Source: Paramicrosporidium saccamoebae KSL3 (lineage: Eukaryota > Fungi > Cryptomycota). From it: a DNA stretch of 8,776 nucleotides. The position numbers and the translations under genes were made by a program. Below, in pieces: positions 1 to 8,776 of this stretch. The number at the start of each line of letters is the position of its first letter. Position 1 is the first letter of the stretch. The stretch covers positions 1 to 8,776 of the forward strand of contig MTSL01000058.1 of NCBI GenBank assembly GCA_002794465.1, given 5' to 3'. The notes under the pieces are model-generated. The model saw nothing but the letters and a program-made list of their open reading frames with translations. It made no database searches and had not been told where the DNA came from.

Positions 1-2
1 TG

Positions 3-2033
3 CCAAAGCTTGGGGCCGTGCGGATCATGAAATTGCTGATAGACAAGAATATTGCCTTCCAGTGCAACATGAATCGTATAGTGCAGAAAGCAAAACCCGA
101 GGTTTTTCAGCTCTTGATTGATGAGGAAATATGGACGACGAATAAGAATGCGAATATTGAAGTTGCCAATGCAATCCGAGAGAAAGATCAAGAATACTTG
201 CAGCGTCTCCTTGAGACGCTCAAAGTGATACCTGACGAGGATTGCATCGAGTTATTAATCTATAATCGCAATTCAGATGCCTTCAAATGGATAAAGTCCA
301 CCCATCCCAACTGGACGCTTGATCAGAAACTGGTTGATAGATTCGTGCAAGGTGGATCAGGAATCATCTTGGAATGGCTCGACTCTCTCAATCTCGACTT
401 GCTTCAACTAAGCGAAACTGTCTTGGATGATGCATTTCAAAAAAGGCATTTCCGTGTTCTCGAATGGCTTTTGAAAAAGAGCCAGCGCGATGGGACGCAC
501 AAGTTTCCATTGGAATGGACGTGGCAACAAGAAGACATTGCTGTTATCGTTAGAGAAGAGTGTGTACAACTTTTGGAATGGTATGGGACCATCAATCCTG
601 GCTGGAAGTTGAGCGAAGCAAACATTGCGTTTGCGGTTACTTGGGGACTTTTGTCTATTCTGGAAGGGCATGCTCGTCAAAATCCTGATTGGACCTTGAA
701 CCCAGCCGCAATCGACGTTGCCATTAGGTTAGGATATTTGCCTATTTTGATGTGGCACGCTGACAGAGTTCCAAGCTGGGTCTTGCAGCAAGCTGGTATT
801 GATAGTGTCGCTGCGCGAGGGTACGTGCACATTTTGGAGTGGAATGATTCCTTGAATCGCGCAGCAATTATGCCGAGCGCAGATGCGCTGAAACAGGCAT
901 ATGAACACGGGCACTTGGAGCTCCTCGAATGGTTCCTGATGAAATATCCCGACCAGGTTCTAACATTCCGACCCGAGTGGGCGTTGAGTGAGAAAGACAT
1001 TCAAGCTATCATTGAACAAGGATACTTGCACATTATCTTGTGGCACCTCTCTATCAATCCTAACTGGACACCAAGTGAAGAGCATATTGACACTGCTATC
1101 GAGAATGGACATTTGCTCGCTCTGGTGCAGTGTCTCCCCACTGATCTTGCACTGCCTTTACCAAGCGTATATCAACTTGATAGGATGTTCACAGAGGAAA
1201 GAGTCAATGATTTCGAATGGTTCTTTTCTTCCAATCGTGAATGGATTTTACCGCAAGAAACCATTGACGCTGCCAGTAAAGACGGATATCATAAAGTTTT
1301 GAGATGGTATGCCCGGATGAGGCCTGACATGCTAAAGCCCAAAGTAGGTAAACTTATGGATTCTGGCACGAACGAAACTTTGGGAATTATAACTTTGGAA
1401 TGGTTCCTGGAAACGTTCCACCATGGTGATTTAGAATCGTTCTGCCCGAATTGGAGGTTGAACGCTGAGAATGTCACTACTGCTATAACGAATGGGTGTA
1501 TGTATGTTTTGAAATGGTATGCAATCGGAAACCCTGAGTGGAAATTGGGGGAACGCGGCATTACTGCTGCAATCCAACATGACCGCCTGTTAATTTTGAA
1601 GTGGTTCGCGGACATGGAGCCTAACTGGACGATGAGTCAAGATAACATTGATACCGTCGTGCTGTATGGACATGGGCACATTTTGAGATGGTATTTCACC
1701 ACCAATCGTCCAATGCTTCTACCAAGCCCAAATTCGTTGAGCCGGGCTCTCTTTAGATTTCCATCGTACAAAACCCTCGACTGCTACACCCACACGCGCC
1801 GTGACTGGGAGGTAAATCAAGAGCACATTGATGATGCTACGAAATACGGACAGTTGCAAGTTTTGGAATGGTATGACCGTGTCATGCCCAACAGTATCAG
1901 ACCAAGCGATGAGGCACTAATCTCGGCTCGTGAGGCTGGCCACGAAAATGTCATCGTATGGCATGTAAAGAAGCATTGCGAAAAAAGCATGATTTTATTG
2001 CTGACTCTCATAAAATCGCTTGAGATACAGTAG
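3..2033 (+). CDS. Ankyrin-like repeat protein, family copy 1 (5'-truncated by the window edge; ~158 N-terminal aa inferred to lie upstream)
   Basis: The frame is open from position 3 (PKLGAVRIMKLLIDK...). It matches copy 2 at offset 3047 and copy 3 at offset 6045, so GTG at 18 is an internal Val, not a start. The offset to copy 3 is 6045 at both the window start and the stop (TAG 2031-2033), implying no net indel. Carries repeated PxWxL...IDxAxxxGxLxILxW units. Confidence 0.92.
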   Translation, partial: PKLGAVRIMKLLIDKNIAFQCNMNRIVQKAKPEVFQLLIDEEIWTTNKNANIEVANAIREKDQEYLQRLLETLKVIPDEDCIELLIYNRNSDAFKWIKSTHPNWTLDQKLVDRFVQGGSGIILEWLDSLNLDLLQLSETVLDDAFQKRHFRVLEWLLKKSQRDGTHKFPLEWTWQQEDIAVIVREECVQLLEWYGTINPGWKLSEANIAFAVTWGLLSILEGHARQNPDWTLNPAAIDVAIRLGYLPILMWHADRVPSWVLQQAGIDSVAARGYVHILEWNDSLNRAAIMPSADALKQAYEHGHLELLEWFLMKYPDQVLTFRPEWALSEKDIQAIIEQGYLHIILWHLSINPNWTPSEEHIDTAIENGHLLALVQCLPTDLALPLPSVYQLDRMFTEERVNDFEWFFSSNREWILPQETIDAASKDGYHKVLRWYARMRPDMLKPKVGKLMDSGTNETLGIITLEWFLETFHHGDLESFCPNWRLNAENVTTAITNGCMYVLKWYAIGNPEWKLGERGITAAIQHDRLLILKWFADMEPNWTMSQDNIDTVVLYGHGHILRWYFTTNRPMLLPSPNSLSRALFRFPSYKTLDCYTHTRRDWEVNQEHIDDATKYGQLQVLEWYDRVMPNSIRPSDEALISAREAGHENVIVWHVKKHCEKSMILLLTLIKSLEIQ
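303..1973 (+). repeat. Intragenic ankyrin-like repeat region of copy 1 (~18 units)
   Basis: Units from HPNWTLDQKLVDRFVQGG... to ...AREAGHENVIVWHVKK. The ankyrin assignment rests on the AxxxGHLxILxW helix-turn-helix pattern, not on an HMM search. Confidence 0.72.
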
Positions 2034-2095
2034 CCCTTATACTATTCCACAGTATATAAAGTGATTGGCAGATTCGTGACCAACCATTTATTAAA
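2034..2095 (+). terminator. Candidate 3'-end/polyadenylation signal block, copy 1
   Basis: CCCTTATACTATT directly after the stop, TATATAAAG at stop+20 (2053-2061) and ATTAAA at stop+57 (2090-2095). The same offsets recur after copies 2 and 3. Confidence 0.4.
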
Positions 2096-2447
2096 GGCTG
2101 CGAAATGTATAGTGGGATCCCTGTTGATGGATGAGCTCGCTTTTATTAAAGTATATGGCTCCTTTATAGGCAGCTATTTTTAATAGGTGATCGGACTGAA
2201 CTGAGGCCAAGTAAATGTGTCCGTAACTGGCATATTGTAAAATATTCAAACTGTGGCGACCAATAAAGGGAGCACGATTTTAATCAGTCTTAATTATGAC
2301 CTTTTGTCAGCTCGACAGTTACATAGTCCCACTGGTAGCAGGAGCGCTCACTCTCGTCCAACTTAGGTCAACAACCACGACCAAGTCAGCAATTCACCCG
2401 AACTACCGTTTGCTAGTGATGAGTCAGAGTTAGTGCCCCTGCCCTCG

Positions 2448-2572
2448 CACGCCTATATAAAAGCAGTAGCGGAGTTTATTGGGCGACTGACATCTATCCT
2501 CGCCTATAATACAGCCGGGGCAGCGACTATTCACGGCAATTAATTGACTACGCAACGCTAGCACTGGTAGCC
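2448..2572 (+). promoter_or_regulatory. Putative core promoter of copy 2
   Basis: TATATAAAAG (2454-2463), TAGCGGAGTTTATT (2467-2480), second TATAAT (2505-2510), CCGGGGcagcgactat (2515-2530) and palindrome CAATTAATTG (2537-2546). Homologous motifs occur in the same order before copy 3, and the TAGCGGAGTTTATT and CCGGGG blocks also before copy 4. Confidence 0.6.
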
Positions 2573-2632
2573 ATGCGTCTATTACGCGCTATGTTTTATC
2601 TACCCTTTTTTCTCAGACCTATCATCGGTTCA
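2573..2632 (+). other. Predicted N-terminal signal peptide, copy 2
   Basis: Basic n-region (MRLLR), hydrophobic h-region (AMFYLPFFL) and small residues at the c-region (IIGS/S). Judged by eye, no predictor run. Confidence 0.65.
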
Positions 2633-5071
2633 AGCCACATTAATTTGAACGAAATGACTGAGGAAGAACTATACAGATACGCAACTAATCCGAACCGTGA
2701 TGCTGATACGTTCGCATCGATTGTGAGAGTAGCCAGAGAGAATAAGTATACCATGTTCCTCGAAAATATATCTATCATGCCAAATGTGTCGGCTGAGGAT
2801 CGTGATAACTCTTTTCAAGACTGGCGTATTTTCCAATGGTCCCCTGAGCCACGTTCAAATCTGAGCCAAGACGAGGAGAAAAAAGCCATTCCCCTTCTAG
2901 AAGCTGATGATCCAAAGTGTCTTGAGTCCCTTTCAGCAGAGTTGCTTAATGCGGTGCTGGACCCATTCTACTTGGCTGAATTTGATGCCGTCAATCTTGC
3001 AAACACTATGGCAGATTTGAGAGTGTTCTCCAGATACGACTTGGATCTGCCAAAGCTTGGGGCCGTGCGGATCATGAAATTACTGATAGACAAGAATATT
3101 GCGTTCCAGTGCGACATTTACCGCACAGTTCGGGATGGAAATGCCAAAGTCCTTCAATTCTTGGTTGATGAGAGGGTATGGAAGGCCGATGAGAATGTAA
3201 ATCGTGAAGTTGTCCTTGCAATCTACGGGGGAGAACAAGAATACTTGCAGCGCCTTCTTGAGATGCTCAAAGTGGTGCCTAACACAGAGTGCGTCAAGTT
3301 ACTGATTGAGAAACAAAATTCAGATGCTTTCAGATGGATAAAGTCGGCTCATCCCGACTGGAAGATCAATCAGGCACTGGTCGATTACATGGTACAACGT
3401 GGATCAGGAGACGATTTAGAATGGTGTGACTCTCTTAATCTCGACTTGCTCCAACTAAACGAAACCATCCTAGATGACGCATTTCAAAGAGGTCATTTCC
3501 GTGTTCTCGAATGGCTTTTGAAAAAGAGTCAGCGCGATGGAGTGTACGAGTTCCCATTGGAATGGACGTGGCAACAAAACGACATTGATACTATCGTTGA
3601 ACAAGGATGTGTACAGCTCGTAGAATGGTACGGGAAGATCAGTCCTGGCTGGAATCTGAATGAAACGAACATTGCGTCTGCGGTTGAACAAGGGCTCTTG
3701 ATTATTTTGGAAGACTACGCTAGTAAGCATCCTGGCTGGGCCCTACAACAAACTGAAATCGAGATTGCCATTAAAGGAGGACATTTGCACATTTTAAGGT
3801 GGCACGCCGAGAGAATTCCGAGCTGGGTTTTGCAGCAAGCTGAAATCGATAGTGCTGCTGCGCGAGGACATATGCACATTATAAAATGGAACATTTCCTT
3901 TAACAGCGCAACGCTTTTACCTAGCGCAAATGCGCTTAATCAGGCACGCGTATATGAGTACTTGGAGCCCCTTGAATGGTTCCTGGTAAAGTGTCCTGAT
4001 CAGATACTAGCATTCCGACCCGAGTGGGCGTTGAGTGAGAGAGACATTCAGGCTGCCATTGAGCAAGGATACTTGCACATTATCTTGTGGCACCTCTCTG
4101 TCAATCCTCACTGGGCACCAGGTGAAATGGAAATTGATGCTGCTATCGAGAATGGACATTTACAAGCTCTAGTTCAATGTCTCTCTGATAATCTTGCGCT
4201 GCCTCTACCAAGTGTGTATCAACTTGAAAAGATGTTTGCGGAGGAAAGAGCCGGCGATCTCGAATGGCTTTTCTCTTGCGGTCGTGAATGGATTTTATCG
4301 CAAGAAACCATTGATGCTGCTACTGAAGGCGGATATCATGAAATCTTGAGATGGTACGCCCGAAAAATGCCCAACATGCTAAAACCCAACATAGCTACGC
4401 TTGCGGATTTTGAAACAGCCGAAAATTCGGCAATGTTAACTTTCGAATGGTTCCTGGAAATGTTCTACCACGACAGTTTACAGTTGTTTAAACCTGACTG
4501 GGAGTTGGACACGACTTTTGCAGCCATGGATGGATGTATATACACTTTAAAATGCCACGCAATCCATTACCCATTCCGGAAATTGGGGGAACGCGAAATC
4601 ACCGCTGCGATCGAGCATGACCACCTGCCAATCTTGGAGTGGTGGGCAGACAGGGAGCCTAACTGGGTGATGAGTCAAAATGACATTGAGGCTGCCGTTT
4701 TGTATGGCCATGCACACATTTTGAAGTGGTACCTTGAAACCAACCGCCGAATGCCTCTGCCAGGCCCAAAAGTGTTGAGTCGGGTTCTTCTTAGGTTTCC
4801 ATCATACAAAACCCTCGACTGCTACACCCATACGCGCCGTGACTGGGAGGTAAATCAAGAGTGCATCGATGATGCTACTAAAAATGGACAATTGCGGGCT
4901 TTGGAATGGTATGATCGTGTCATGCCCAACAGCGTCAGACCAAGCGATGAGGCACTGAGCTTGGCCCATGATGCTGGTCACAATAACACTATCGTGTGGT
5001 GTGTAAAAAAATATCACTCAGAAGGCATGATTTTTTTGCTGACTCTTATGAATTCGCTCAAGATACAGTAG
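2573..5071 (+). CDS. Putative secreted ankyrin-like repeat protein, family copy 2 (832 aa)
   Basis: Uninterrupted 832-aa ORF with the ATG in gccATGc context. Hydrophobic N-terminus MRLLRAMFYLPFFLRPIIGS. About 18 repeats with the AxxxGHLxILxW core typical of degenerate ankyrin repeats. Full-length paralogy to copies 1 and 3, with many synonymous differences. Confidence 0.93.
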   Translation: MRLLRAMFYLPFFLRPIIGSSHINLNEMTEEELYRYATNPNRDADTFASIVRVARENKYTMFLENISIMPNVSAEDRDNSFQDWRIFQWSPEPRSNLSQDEEKKAIPLLEADDPKCLESLSAELLNAVLDPFYLAEFDAVNLANTMADLRVFSRYDLDLPKLGAVRIMKLLIDKNIAFQCDIYRTVRDGNAKVLQFLVDERVWKADENVNREVVLAIYGGEQEYLQRLLEMLKVVPNTECVKLLIEKQNSDAFRWIKSAHPDWKINQALVDYMVQRGSGDDLEWCDSLNLDLLQLNETILDDAFQRGHFRVLEWLLKKSQRDGVYEFPLEWTWQQNDIDTIVEQGCVQLVEWYGKISPGWNLNETNIASAVEQGLLIILEDYASKHPGWALQQTEIEIAIKGGHLHILRWHAERIPSWVLQQAEIDSAAARGHMHIIKWNISFNSATLLPSANALNQARVYEYLEPLEWFLVKCPDQILAFRPEWALSERDIQAAIEQGYLHIILWHLSVNPHWAPGEMEIDAAIENGHLQALVQCLSDNLALPLPSVYQLEKMFAEERAGDLEWLFSCGREWILSQETIDAATEGGYHEILRWYARKMPNMLKPNIATLADFETAENSAMLTFEWFLEMFYHDSLQLFKPDWELDTTFAAMDGCIYTLKCHAIHYPFRKLGEREITAAIEHDHLPILEWWADREPNWVMSQNDIEAAVLYGHAHILKWYLETNRRMPLPGPKVLSRVLLRFPSYKTLDCYTHTRRDWEVNQECIDDATKNGQLRALEWYDRVMPNSVRPSDEALSLAHDAGHNNTIVWCVKKYHSEGMIFLLTLMNSLKIQ
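3350..5011 (+). repeat. Intragenic ankyrin-like repeat region of copy 2 (~18 units, mostly 29 aa / 87 nt)
   Basis: Consecutive 29-aa units, e.g. SPGWNLNETNIASAVEQGLLIILEDYASK / HPGWALQQTEIEIAIKGGHLHILRWHAER / IPSWVLQQAEIDSAAARGHMHIIKWNISF. Confidence 0.75.
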
Positions 5072-5133
5072 CCCTTATACTATTATGCGGTATATAAAGT
5101 GAGTGGCAGGTCCTAGGTGAGCCATTTCATAAA
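5072..5133 (+). terminator. Candidate 3'-end/polyadenylation signal block, copy 2
   Basis: TATATAAAG at 5091-5099 (stop+20) and CATAAA at 5128-5133 (stop+57). Confidence 0.4.
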
Positions 5134-5455
5134 GATTGTGGGGTTTGTAGCAAGACCATTTACCGTGGATTTGTAAATATAATGTACTCTTTCGCAAAGG
5201 TACTCGAAATGACACAAGGTCAAGCAAACATGTTTATAAAGGGCTAATCACGAGAGATTCAGGCCGTGGTGGCTGATGGAAAATATGCAATCCCCGTCAG
5301 TTGTAATTAAAACTCTTTGGTTCCAGATCGGCCGCCTCGTATTTAAATTGGTGAGTGGGATTCCTCTCGCTTAACGCAGGTCAATGACCATGGCCAAACC
5401 AATGCTTTACTCGAATTTTTGTTTGCTAGCGATGCACCAGAAACAATCACCTCGT

Positions 5456-5465
5456 CCCCCCCCCC
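5456..5465. repeat. Poly-C homopolymer (C10)
   Basis: Ten consecutive C ending 5 nt upstream of the TATA element of copy 3. The homologous stretches in the other spacers are interrupted (gcccctgccctcg; gtccctgttcttt). Confidence 0.9.
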
Positions 5466-5570
5466 ACGCCTATATAATACAGTAGCGGAGTTTATTAAAT
5501 AACTGACATTTATCCTCGTCTATAACACGGCCGGGGCGGCGACTATATCTGTGACAATTAATTGGCAACC
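5466..5570 (+). promoter_or_regulatory. Putative core promoter of copy 3
   Basis: TATATAATAC (5471-5480), TAGCGGAGTTTATT (5483-5496), TATAAC (5521-5526), CCGGGGcggcgactat (5531-5546), CAATTAATTG (5555-5564). Confidence 0.6.
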
Positions 5571-5630
5571 ATGCATCTATTGCGAGCTGTGTTTTATCTG
5601 TTCTTTCTTTTAAAATCCATCATTGGTTCA
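5571..5630 (+). other. Predicted N-terminal signal peptide, copy 3
   Basis: MHLLRAVFYLFFLLKSIIGS: n/h/c organisation, hydrophobicity retained despite substitutions. Confidence 0.7.
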
Positions 5631-8078
5631 AGTCGCACTAATTTGGACAAGATGACCGAGGAAGAGCTATACAGATACGCAACCAATCCGAACCGTGAGG
5701 CTGGTAAATTCGCATCAATTGTGAGAGTGGCGACCAAAAAAAAGTATACCATGTTCCTCGAAAATGTTTCCATCATGCCAAATCTGCAGACTGCAGAACG
5801 TGACAGTTATTTTAGGAACCGACGTAACCTTCAGTGGCGCCCTGAACCTCGTTTAGTCTTGAGCCAAGACGCGGAACAAGAGATTATTCCAATTTTAGAA
5901 GCTGATGATCCATGGCGTCTTGAGTCTCTTTCAGCGGATCTACGTAATGCGGTGCTTGATCCATTCTATTTGGCTGAATTTGATGCTGTCAATCTTGCAA
6001 GCACTCTGGCAGATTTGAGAGTGTTTTCCAGATACGACTTGGATCTGCCAAAGCTTGGGGCTGTGCGGATCATTAAATTGTTAATAGACAAGGACATTAC
6101 GTTTCAGTGTGACATTTGTCTTATAGTTCATGAAGGAAATGACAAAACCATCCAGTTCCTGATCGATGAGAAAGTATGGAGGGTGGACAAGAATGCAAAC
6201 ATTGAAGTCGCCAATGCAATCCGAGAGAATAAACAAAAATACTTGCAGCGTCTCCTTGAGACGTTCAAAGTGGTACCTGACGAGCATTGCATCAAGTTAT
6301 TAATCTATAATCGCAATTCAGATGCTTTCAAATGGATAAAATCGGCTTATCCCGACTGGAGGATAAATCAAGAGATAGTCGATCAATTAGTGCGATATGG
6401 AATGGGAGACCTGATGGAATGGTGCGACTCTCTCAATCTCGACTTGCTTCAACCAAGCGAAACCGTCCTAGAGGACGCATTTCAAAAAAGACATTTTCGC
6501 GTTCTCGAATGGCTTTTGAAAAAGAGTCATCGTGATGAACTGTACAAGTTCCCATTGGAATGGACATGGCAACAAAATGAGATTGATATGATCGTGAAAA
6601 AAGAATGTACACAACTCTTAGAATGGTACAGAACAATCAATCCTGGCTGGAAGTTGAGTGAAGGAAACATTGCGTTTGCGGCTAATTGGGGACTTTTGTC
6701 CATTCTGGAAGGGCATGCCGATCAAAATCCTGATTGGACTTTGCAGCAGGCTGAAATTAGCCTTGCTGTTATGGAAGGACATTTGGAAATTTTAAAGTGG
6801 CACGCCAATAGAGCTCCTGATTGGGTTCTGCAGCAAGCTGAAATTGACAGTGCCACTGCGCGAGGACATGTGCACATTCTGAAATGGAATGATTCTTTAA
6901 GCAGAACAACGATTATACCTAGCGCAGATGCGCTGAATCAGGCACGTGAATATGGGAATTTAAAGTCCCTTGAATGGTTTCTGTTAAAGTATCCTGATCA
7001 GATATTAGCGTTCCGACCCGAGTGGAGGTTGAATGAGGACAAAATTCGAGCCGCCATTGAGAAAGGATATTTGCAAATCATATTGTGGCACGTCTCTAGC
7101 AACCCTAACTGGACACCCAATGAAGTGCATATTGACACTGCTGTCAAGACTGGAAACTTGCACACTCTAATCCAGTGTTTCTCTGCTAGTCTTGCGCTGC
7201 CTCTACCAAGCATATCGCAACTCGAAGCAATGCTTGCAGAGGATGAAATAAATAACCTCGAATGGTTGTTCTCTGTCAGCCGTGAATGGATTTTACCACA
7301 AGAAAAGATTGATACTGCCACTAGAAGTGGGAATCATAAAGTTTTGAACTGGTATGCACGCATAAAGCCTAGCATGCTGAAACCCAGCGTGGGTGAACTC
7401 GTGGGTCTTTACACGGACAAAACTTTGGGAATTCTGACTTTGGAATGGTTCCTGGAAAGGTTCCACCGTGATAGTTCAAAGTCGTTTTATCCTACTTGGA
7501 AGTTGGATCGGCAGGACATTTTTATTGCTGCCACGAACGGATGTATAAACGTTTTAAAATGGCAGGCAGGCAGTCAGCCTGACTGGAAATTGAGCGAAAG
7601 CAACCTTAGTGCTGCAATTCGACATGGACGCTTATTAGTCTTGGAATGGTTTTCAAACCTGAATCCTCCTTGGATGATGAGTCAGGATAATATTGATGAT
7701 GCCGTTGAGTGTGGTCAGGGACACATTTTGAAATGGTATTTTGAAACCAATCGCCCGATGCTTCTACCAAGCCCACATATATTGGACCGGGTTCTCCTCA
7801 GGTTCCCATCATACAGAACCCTCGACTTTTACACCTCGACACGTTGTGACTGGGCGGTGAGTCAAAATCACATTGACTCTGCCACTATAAATGGACAGTT
7901 GCGGGCTTTGGAATGGTACGATCGCGTCATGCCCAATAGTATCAAACCAAGTCTAGCTGCACTAAACGCGGCTAGGAATTCTGGCCATAGCAACCTCATC
8001 GCATGGTGTATAAGAAAACACCACTCAGAAGGCGCAATTTTCTTGCTGACCCTTATGAATTCTCTCAAGATACAGTAG
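5571..8078 (+). CDS. Putative secreted ankyrin-like repeat protein, family copy 3 (835 aa)
   Basis: The ATG at 5571 (accATGc) aligns with the ATGs of copies 2 and 4, so the ORF-track start at TTG 5562 is not the homologous start. N-terminus MHLLRAVFYLFFLLKSIIGS. Colinear with copy 2 apart from a net 3-codon indel. Confidence 0.93.
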   Translation: MHLLRAVFYLFFLLKSIIGSSRTNLDKMTEEELYRYATNPNREAGKFASIVRVATKKKYTMFLENVSIMPNLQTAERDSYFRNRRNLQWRPEPRLVLSQDAEQEIIPILEADDPWRLESLSADLRNAVLDPFYLAEFDAVNLASTLADLRVFSRYDLDLPKLGAVRIIKLLIDKDITFQCDICLIVHEGNDKTIQFLIDEKVWRVDKNANIEVANAIRENKQKYLQRLLETFKVVPDEHCIKLLIYNRNSDAFKWIKSAYPDWRINQEIVDQLVRYGMGDLMEWCDSLNLDLLQPSETVLEDAFQKRHFRVLEWLLKKSHRDELYKFPLEWTWQQNEIDMIVKKECTQLLEWYRTINPGWKLSEGNIAFAANWGLLSILEGHADQNPDWTLQQAEISLAVMEGHLEILKWHANRAPDWVLQQAEIDSATARGHVHILKWNDSLSRTTIIPSADALNQAREYGNLKSLEWFLLKYPDQILAFRPEWRLNEDKIRAAIEKGYLQIILWHVSSNPNWTPNEVHIDTAVKTGNLHTLIQCFSASLALPLPSISQLEAMLAEDEINNLEWLFSVSREWILPQEKIDTATRSGNHKVLNWYARIKPSMLKPSVGELVGLYTDKTLGILTLEWFLERFHRDSSKSFYPTWKLDRQDIFIAATNGCINVLKWQAGSQPDWKLSESNLSAAIRHGRLLVLEWFSNLNPPWMMSQDNIDDAVECGQGHILKWYFETNRPMLLPSPHILDRVLLRFPSYRTLDFYTSTRCDWAVSQNHIDSATINGQLRALEWYDRVMPNSIKPSLAALNAARNSGHSNLIAWCIRKHHSEGAIFLLTLMNSLKIQ
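6348..8018 (+). repeat. Intragenic ankyrin-like repeat region of copy 3 (~18 units)
   Basis: Units from YPDWRINQEIVDQLVRYG... to ...ARNSGHSNLIAWCIRK, in the same register as copies 1 and 2. Confidence 0.72.
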
Positions 8079-8140
8079 CCCTTACACTATTATGCGGTAT
8101 ATAAAGTAATTGGCAGATCCATGATGAACGATTGTATAAA
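8079..8140 (+). terminator. Candidate 3'-end/polyadenylation signal block, copy 3
   Basis: TATATAAAG at 8098-8106 (stop+20) and TATAAA at 8135-8140 (stop+57). Confidence 0.4.
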
Positions 8141-8467
8141 GATTGTGGGGTTTGCAGCAAGACCACTTACCGTGGGTTCATAGATATAACGCACTCCTTC
8201 GCAAAAGTGCACAAAGTGACACGAGGTCAAGCAAACATGTTTACAAAGGGCTAATTACGAGAGATTCAGACTGTGGTGGCTGATGGAAAATATGCAATTC
8301 TCGTCAGTTTTAATTAAAGCTCTTTGTTATCAGATCGGCCACCTCACACTTCAATTGGTAAGTGAGATGCCTCTCGCTTAGCGCAGGTCGATGGCCATGA
8401 CCGAGCCAATAGCTCAACTAAAGTATTGTGAGTTAGCAATGAGACATAACCAATGTCCCTGTTCTTT

Positions 8468-8606
8468 CATACCTGTAATAAAACAATAGCGGAGTTTATT
8501 AAAGAGCCTCGTGACGGCAATCTTCTTTTATACTACAACCGGGGAGCGGCGACCATATCTGTGTCAGCCTATTAATATTAATTACGCAACATTAGCGCCG
8601 ATAGTC
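8468..8606 (+). promoter_or_regulatory. Putative core promoter of copy 4 (TATA elements diverged)
   Basis: Retains TAGCGGAGTTTATT (8487-8500) and CCGGGGagcggcgaccat (from 8539). The TATA positions read TGTAATAAAAC and TTTTATAC. AT-only palindrome ATTAATATTAAT at 8571-8582. Confidence 0.5.
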
Positions 8607-8666
8607 ATGCATCTGTCACGCGCTGCATTTTGTCTGCTCTTTTTGCTCAAACCCGTCATTAGTGCA
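8607..8666 (+). other. Predicted N-terminal signal peptide, copy 4
   Basis: MHLSRAAFCLLFLLKPVISA|S: hydrophobic core with Ala at the putative -1 position. Confidence 0.7.
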
Positions 8667-8776
8667 AGTCACATTGGTTTGAGTAGCGGGATGACCGAAG
8701 AGGAGTTATACAGATACGCCACCAACCCAAACCGTGAGGCCGGTACATTTATACCAATTGTGAGAGTAGCGACCAA
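8607..8776 (+). CDS. Family copy 4, N-terminal 56 codons (runs off the window end)
   Basis: Manual translation gives MHLSRAAFCLLFLLKPVISASHIGLSSGMTEEELYRYATNPNREAGTFIPIVRVAT, clearly homologous to the N-termini of copies 2 and 3. It is preceded by the same promoter motifs and is absent from the ORF track, apparently because it is short and truncated. Confidence 0.9.
   Translation, partial: MHLSRAAFCLLFLLKPVISASHIGLSSGMTEEELYRYATNPNREAGTFIPIVRVAT

Follow-up and report, generated by a model that had tools for sequence, protein, structure and literature searches.

The 8,776-nt stretch of Paramicrosporidium saccamoebae DNA analyzed here (the window) contains a tandem array of four paralogous, intronless genes, all on the + strand with intact frames and numbered copies 1 to 4 from 5′ to 3′. 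They belong to a protein family that combines a signal peptide-like N-terminal leader with a long solenoid of shortened ankyrin-type repeats. The four genes, and the parts of copy 2 that define the family architecture, are as follows.

3..2033, + strand: copy 1, 676 codons plus stop; the frame is open to the window start, its 5′ end lies outside the window, and it can be aligned with copies 2 to 4
2573..5071, + strand: copy 2, complete gene with an ATG start, 832 aa
2573..2641, + strand: copy 2 leader, residues 1 to 23, delimited by hydropathy, the family alignment, and the AlphaFold2 (AF2) model
2642..3259, + strand: copy 2 N-terminal module, residues 24 to 229, all-alpha and family specific; its last part grades into degenerate repeats
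3260..5017, + strand: copy 2 repeat solenoid, residues 230 to 815, with 19 units of 29 to 30 aa
5018..5068, + strand: copy 2 C-terminal amphipathic helix, residues 816 to 832, modeled as a helix at 817 to 831; the same tail is found in relatives
5571..8078, + strand: copy 3, complete gene, 835 aa from its ATG, with the leader at 5571-5639
8607..>8776, + strand: copy 4, first 56 codons, with the leader at 8607-8675; the window end cuts off the rest

The array has a period of 2998 to 3038 nt, whether measured from start to start or from stop to stop. Where full length, the frames comprise 832 to 835 codons, and no stop codon is found inside any of them; by our own arithmetic, the probability that a frame stays open by chance over 832 codons is about 1e-17, given 3 stops per 64 codons. 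One frame spans everything from the leader to the C-terminal helix conserved in the family, which marks these genes as intronless. The copies share 64 to 67% identity at the protein level and 75 to 78% at the DNA level. Copy 1 corresponds to residues ~157 to 832 of copy 2, and its 5′ end is truncated almost as much by the end of the deposited contig, which begins only about 171 nt farther upstream. That contig carries the whole of copy 4, with an unbroken 835-codon frame (locus L004, 7892..10399). The mechanical open reading frame (ORF) of copy 3 begins at a TTG codon 9 nt before the ATG. The initial annotation had described four same-strand paralogs with intact frames at a period of about 3.0 kb in a compact, intron-poor, eukaryotic-looking locus, and all of this is borne out.

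In copies 2 to 4, residues 1 to 23 consist of Met, a basic n-region, 9 uncharged hydrophobic residues, 1 charged residue, and a short polar stretch, and the c-region ends with small residues at positions -3 and -1. In the AF2 model of copy 2, the leader helix stands apart from the fold, and the segment after it has a predicted local distance difference test score (pLDDT) below 50. Leaders were called by inspection and a hydropathy scan, that is, by a heuristic and not by a trained signal peptide predictor. A signal peptide-like layout is found in 10 of the 11 P. saccamoebae family members with a visible N terminus, and two environmental relatives, P0008 and P0012, have it as well. In sequence, the leaders have diverged; their hydrophobic cores measure 9 to 13 uncharged residues across the members (11 to 13 on five other contigs and in the two environmental relatives). 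In the hydropathy scan, all 10 leaders (8 from the family and 2 from the related cluster L010, described below) have an N-terminal maximum of 1.9 to 3.3, whereas only 3 of 22 valid models of neighboring control genes reach 2.5, and 2 of those 3 are GH47 secretory pathway enzymes. No second hydrophobic segment is found, as hydropathy stays below 1.5 in all other 19-residue windows of the copies, and the copies contain no endoplasmic reticulum (ER) retention tail, transmembrane segment, or glycosylphosphatidylinositol (GPI)-like tail. A C-terminal GPI or tail anchor was considered and rejected: the hydrophobic run there is only about 7 residues long, is followed by polar residues, and is modeled as a capping helix. 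We infer that the leaders are cleavable ER signal peptides. The leaders that the initial annotation had seen in the three copies with visible starts are present in copies 2, 3, and 4, and its assignment of them to the ER type agrees with a signal peptide architecture, as judged by inspection and hydropathy, that is kept across very diverged members.

The hydrophobic stretch might instead represent an uncleaved signal anchor, a mitochondrial presequence, or a buried helix, in which case the proteins would act in or on the parasite as ankyrin scaffolds. Consistent with this, the n-regions contain Arg, His, or Lys, with no acidic residue before approximately position 27, and the core is short (9 residues in the window copies) and then followed by a charged residue. 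However, the n/h/c layout and the small residues at -3 and -1 recur in members that are less than 30% identical, where the cores reach 11 to 13 residues, and the modeled leader is detached from the fold, with a low-confidence junction. Such an alternative therefore appears improbable.

The repeat region of copy 2 is predicted to form a long α-solenoid. The AF2 model (pLDDT, 82.7) consists of 19 regular helix-turn-helix units preceded by 2 to 3 degenerate ones; in each unit, a loop of 7 to 8 residues is followed by two helices, 9 and 10 residues long, with a 3-residue turn between them. Of the 19 modeled units, 15 are 29 to 30 residues long, and the repeat-period autocorrelation also peaks at 29 residues. 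Among 18 regular units, 11 have Trp at loop position 5 and 14 have it at helix B position 26, Gly is found at the turn in 12 and is followed by His in 7, and two helix 2 positions contain Leu in 8 and 11 units, respectively. Helix 1 has Ile or Leu at position 12 in 15 of these units and Ala at position 15 in 12; the TPLH-type motif is absent.

Pfam comparisons place the repeats near the ankyrin families. Ank_4 matches copy 2 with 27.6 bits over the whole protein and 30.6 bits over the repeat region (cutoff, 22.7), a summed score only, while Ank, Ank_2, and Ank_5 stay below their respective cutoffs. Family relatives score up to 43.8 bits with Ank_4 and 29.9 to 31.7 bits with Ank_3. Foldseek searches against PDB list the 24-repeat structure of AnkB, ankyrin-1, and designed ankyrin repeat proteins (DARPins) as the best matches, with E values from 1.6e-7 to 1e-4 and a probability of 1.0; a sequence search of PDB returned no match. 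On the evidence of the model, these repeats are filed here as a putative divergent member of the ankyrin clan with a unit shortened by 3 to 4 residues. The initial annotation had counted about 18 repeats, which is essentially right, and had called them ankyrin-like. The Ank_4 match, weak as it is, and the predicted fold, a repeat solenoid and not a non-repeat structure, are in line with that name, whereas the period of 29 to 30 residues departs from the canonical 33-residue ankyrin unit.

The N-terminal module has several columns that are conserved across the family. It has no Pfam match and no significant fold match in PDB (best E value, 0.08), and a word-index protein search with the module alone retrieved nothing.

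Pairwise dN/dS values (ratios of nonsynonymous to synonymous substitution rates) among the four copies range from 0.33 to 0.37 at dS values of 0.56 to 0.75, with 0.34 to 0.37 for copy 1 versus the others. At such dS, these values indicate old duplicates that are maintained by purifying selection. When the 18 repeats are divided by structural class, dN/dS is 0.18 for the framework, 0.29 for exposed helix B, 0.42 for the loop, and 0.80 (0.61 to 1.01) for the exposed face of helix A plus the turn, a contrast that is partly circular and indicative only, because the classes were picked after the variability table had been seen. Framework positions are invariant among the paralogs in 60 to 90% of the repeats, and exposed helix A positions are invariant in 11 to 28%. 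Canonical ankyrin domains bind through a groove that is lined by their first helices and loops. By analogy, the variable helix A face may line the concave groove of the solenoid.

The nearest paralog switches along the gene (2573-8078; L004 7892-10399): copies 3 and 4 are closest in the N-terminal part, copies 1 and 3 in the middle, and copies 1 and 2 in the C-terminal half. Nucleotide identity between copies 3 and 4 rises to as much as 96% around residues 120 to 180. This pattern indicates putative gene conversion, unequal crossing-over, or recombination within the array.

The P. saccamoebae family includes at least 12 members with the N-terminal module, encoded on six contigs and ranging from about 3 to about 21 repeats; 12 is a lower bound, as the scan covered part of the genome. 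Besides the four members of the window array, there are three at L006, one each at L005, L007, and L011, and the pair P0157 and P0158. The L006 genes (MTSL01000205.1) form a second array of three same-strand genes coding for 783 to 806 aa, whereas the members at the three single loci have 528, 308, and 315 aa, the 315-aa gene (L011, MTSL01000134.1) lying about 15 kb from the window array. P0157 and P0158 are adjacent on a 10.9-kb contig. When 1.84 billion representative proteins were searched exhaustively with HMMER, 719 matched, only 5 of them with E values below 1e-30; the best matches that carry a species name are P. saccamoebae hypothetical proteins. Among the relatives that contain the N-terminal module, all named ones come from P. 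saccamoebae, and the others are JGI and Logan metagenome proteins from contigs of about 1 to 3 kb; beyond these, the matches are generic ankyrin proteins with 25 to 30% identity, for example, from Pythium. A word-index search with full-length copy 2 likewise found just 3 weak generic ankyrin matches. The initial annotation had recognized no named family, and none exists. The HMMER search revealed no housekeeping orthologs in free-living taxa, whose presence the initial annotation had proposed as grounds for abandoning its effector interpretation.

Several other gene groups adjoin or resemble these members. MTSL01000206.1 (L010 1797-12160) contains a third tandem cluster, made up of four related ankyrin-like genes whose N-terminal region differs; a leader is visible in two of them. 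In three proteins of this cluster, the sequence ends in a tail rich in Ser, Pro, and Gln, with a basic K-R-x-R-L-D/E motif about 15 residues from the C terminus. This motif looks like a monopartite nuclear localization signal, which is of note in a parasite that lives in the nucleus. On MTSL01000134.1 (L011 5782-7555), two adjacent genes code for proteins in which a hydrophobic leader precedes low-complexity sequence that is extremely rich in Ser and punctuated by Arg; since they adjoin the 315-aa member, this neighborhood is rich in leader-bearing genes. The 528-aa member (MTSL01000095.1; L005 7739-16050) lies within a run of five GH47 gene models of 199 to 391 aa, which could represent either gene fragments or ER mannosidase-like genes arranged in tandem.

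No correct deposited gene model is found among the family members checked. GenBank has no model for copies 1 to 3 and represents copy 4 by its last 132 residues only (PJF18263.1; L004 10001-10399). A 416-aa model (L006 10001-13835) is a chimera of two neighboring genes of about 800 codons, and a 443-aa model (L005 10001-11587) cuts a false intron out of a single 528-codon frame. The genome was annotated using MAKER with a RepeatScout library and Augustus trained on Rhizopus (PMC5701793), and repeat masking of a multicopy family is a plausible cause of the missing models. The text of the genome paper contains no occurrence of “ankyrin,” “secret,” “signal peptide,” or “effector” (PMC5701793). 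In the absence of correct models, published gene counts, orthogroup comparisons, and proteome-derived secretomes would miss this family.

The absence of models for copies 1 to 3 and the 132-aa fragment model of copy 4 could also be taken to mean that the copies are decaying, functionless duplicates. This is contradicted by the selection data: four frames of 676 to 835 codons without a stop at a dS of about 0.6, with a dN/dS of 0.33 to 0.37 overall and 0.18 for the framework. Furthermore, the promoter-like and 3′ blocks described below are conserved, and the models of other family genes, one a chimera and one with a false intron, are visibly wrong too. Decay is thus hardly tenable as an explanation.

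The array is nuclear DNA of P. saccamoebae, an intranuclear parasite of Saccamoeba that belongs to Rozellomycota and is sister to Microsporidia; its genome has 7.3 Mb, 3750 genes, and a G+C content of 47% (PMC5701793). Window positions 716..8776 are 99.9% identical to MTSL01000134.1 (GCA_002794465.1): positions 716-8501 are identical, and all 9 differences lie in 8502-8724. Seven of the nine are A/G transitions, and at six the window base matches copy 3 at the homologous site. Of the five coding differences, four change the residue, and one of these replaces a Glu of the deposited copy 4 leader with a Lys in the window. The differences could reflect an allele, a collapsed paralog, or another assembly version. 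Downstream on the same 127-kb contig are genes for MCM, a MUS81/BRCA2-like protein, an RRM protein, and STT3.

A foreign origin of the array, as a giant virus insertion, host amoeba DNA, or a misbinned metagenome contig, would be compatible with the binning of the genome from a host-community metagenome and with distant matches that include metagenome contigs with several ankyrin paralogs. Ankyrin families are also large in amoeba-infecting giant viruses. Nevertheless, this origin is very unlikely: eukaryotic housekeeping genes are found on the same contig, the members occupy six contigs with the same compact architecture, the G+C content of the window (41 to 50% per 500-nt window) is near that of the genome, and a viral contig scan, which detects close relatives only, returned no match. 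In particular, the array is not viral, because cellular housekeeping genes sit on its contig. Of the two sources that the initial annotation had offered, a microsporidia- or Rozellomycota-like intracellular parasite has proved correct, whereas a giant virus is excluded by these housekeeping genes. Membership in a giant virus ankyrin multigene family was rejected on the same grounds, the flanking cellular housekeeping genes and the lack of a viral contig match, and a bacterial origin was rejected in view of the eukaryotic neighbors and the intergenic regions of about 500 nt with TATA-like boxes.

Paramicrosporidium is a basal lineage of the microsporidian radiation that inhabits the host nucleus. 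We lean, by a little, toward the view that the array represents a panel of exported binders that act on the host, probably in the host nucleus, with export, exposure, and binding all inferred from features of the genes and their predicted products. According to this view, the N-terminal signal peptide would bring the protein into the parasite ER and be cleaved off, and the mature soluble protein would then leave the parasite cell by default, because it has no second hydrophobic segment and no ER retention tail. As the parasite grows within the amoeba nucleus, the protein might reach host nuclear contents. The mature protein would be a long α-solenoid comprising some 20 ankyrin-type repeats of reduced length, with the family-specific N-terminal module and the C-terminal helix as caps, and might bind host macromolecules. 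The array as a whole would constitute a panel of related binders with differing specificities, because the paralogs differ mainly on the exposed helix A face, the ankyrin binding surface.

The same leaders would be expected if the proteins entered the secretory pathway and were retained by the parasite, in a surface coat, the spore wall, the polar filament apparatus, or the lumen of the ER or Golgi, with the repeats serving as scaffolds. Signal peptides also mark spore wall and polar tube proteins in this lineage, and P. saccamoebae spores carry a polar filament. The conserved N-terminal module and the C-terminal helix could be assembly or anchoring elements, and the overall dN/dS of 0.35 is not extreme. 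However, a transmembrane segment, a GPI-like tail, and a retention motif are all absent, and a repeat number varying from about 3 to about 21, together with variation on one helix face, fits specificity panels better than a structural lattice. Retention by the parasite, the main competing view, is therefore considered unlikely, though it deserves to be taken seriously.

Several observations weigh against the exported panel. The leader calls rest on the heuristic described above; the leader of copy 2 is the weakest, with a maximum hydropathy of 1.87, a charged residue closely follows the hydrophobic core, and the window and the deposited contig disagree at a residue of the copy 4 leader (Lys and Glu, respectively). 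Global template modeling (TM) scores to ankyrin structures are low (~0.2), and pentatricopeptide repeat (PPR) proteins are among the fold matches. Apart from the circularity of the site classes, relaxed constraint could account for a helix A dN/dS of 0.8 just as diversifying selection could. In addition to the missing gene models, exact-product lookups of copies 2 and 3 found no identical record in the assembly or transcript collections, and the RNA used in the genome paper came from spores only (PMC5701793).

A more specific, and decidedly tentative, proposal is that the family and the L010 cluster together supply binders that are released directly into the host nucleus and might target amoebal chromatin or nuclear proteins. 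If true, this would be the first described effector repertoire of an intranuclear eukaryotic parasite, built on a shortened, Trp-rich ankyrin variant and hidden because gene prediction skipped the genes. The family missed by the annotation may be the main host interaction repertoire of the parasite. In practical terms, expression and localization work could start from this defined set of candidates, for which the fold has been predicted and the variable surface mapped.

The spacers between the genes are about 500 nt long and mostly diverged, with 58 to 69% identity between those upstream of copies 2 and 3. Each contains two conserved islands: a block directly 3′ of the stop codon and, 93 to 133 nt upstream of each ATG, a TATA-like box with an invariant 14-nt motif on its 3′ side.

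2034..2071, + strand: conserved post-stop block, repeated at 5072-5109 and 8079-8116 (alignment)
2454..2480, + strand: TATA-like box and invariant 14-nt motif of copy 2, 93 to 119 nt upstream of the ATG
5471..5496, + strand: TATA-like box and 14-nt motif of copy 3 (alignment)
8474..8500, + strand: degenerate TATA-like box and 14-nt motif of copy 4 (alignment)

The 20-nt core of the post-stop block and the 14-nt motif each occur 3 times, versus 0 expected. The former is a probable 3′-end formation region, and the TATA-like box with the 14-nt motif is a probable core promoter; a search for the 14-nt motif upstream of the genes of other subfamilies did not find it. The presence of conserved islands on both sides of the gene implies that the duplicated unit is the whole gene with its flanks. 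Just 5′ of the copy 3 TATA-like box, at window positions 5456-5467, there is a run of C residues that is missing in the other two spacers. tRNA and Rfam scans of the window returned no matches, and no DNA-level tandem repeats of note are found in it. Antisense ORFs of 86 to 108 aa lie inside the genes on the - strand (408-680, 677-1000, 1289-1615, 3470-3730, and 6998-7321) and are taken as chance products of coding-strand composition.

Among known systems, the canonical ankyrin proteins (the 24-repeat domains of AnkB and AnkR and the DARPins) share with this family the stacked helix-turn-helix-loop units, the interhelix Gly followed by an aromatic residue or His, and the Leu-rich second helix. 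In contrast to them, the P. saccamoebae unit is 3 to 4 residues shorter, with a truncated loop, no TPLH-type start of helix 1, and conserved Trp residues.

The ankyrin effectors of Legionella, Coxiella, Anaplasma, and Wolbachia and the ankyrin families of giant viruses are similar in that an intracellular parasite directs an ankyrin binder against a eukaryotic host, amoebae included. Those proteins, however, enter the host through type IV secretion or are synthesized within its cells, whereas here the genes are eukaryotic nuclear genes and the leader is of the ER type. No specific homology to the bacterial effector or giant virus ankyrin families was found.

The large gene families of microsporidia, such as NemLGF, come from the closest lineage and likewise have a targeting signal, at least 10 paralogs per genome, and a clade-restricted distribution (PMC5423893). 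In that study, Nematocida proteins found experimentally to be host exposed are enriched for a signal peptide, large family membership, and clade restriction (PMC5423893). By these measures, the P. saccamoebae family, which is clade specific, has at least 12 paralogs compared with a threshold of at least 10 and a leader in 10 of 11 members versus 3 of 22 controls. However, the NemLGF-type families have either no recognizable fold or LRR or other domains, with no ankyrin-type family among those listed in the text consulted, and their host exposure was established by proximity labeling, whereas here it is predicted from the genes (PMC5423893).

A further parallel is provided by plasmodiophorids, whose largest secretome cluster is made up of secreted ankyrin proteins, including one that binds host MPK3 (PMC12503489). 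Like P. saccamoebae, Plasmodiophora brassicae and Spongospora subterranea are obligate intracellular eukaryotic parasites, and their ANK effectors form an expanded family (dozens of members) that combines a signal peptide with ankyrin-type repeats and has a conserved hydrophobic framework with polymorphic surface residues (PMC12503489). They differ in having repeats of 32 to 33 residues, compared with 29 to 30 with two conserved Trp residues here; the P. saccamoebae family also has its own N-terminal module and C-terminal helix and an amoeba nucleus as its host setting. The only family signal seen here to be shared by the two is the generic Ank clan. Secreted ankyrin expansion in intracellular eukaryotic parasites is already established in plasmodiophorids.

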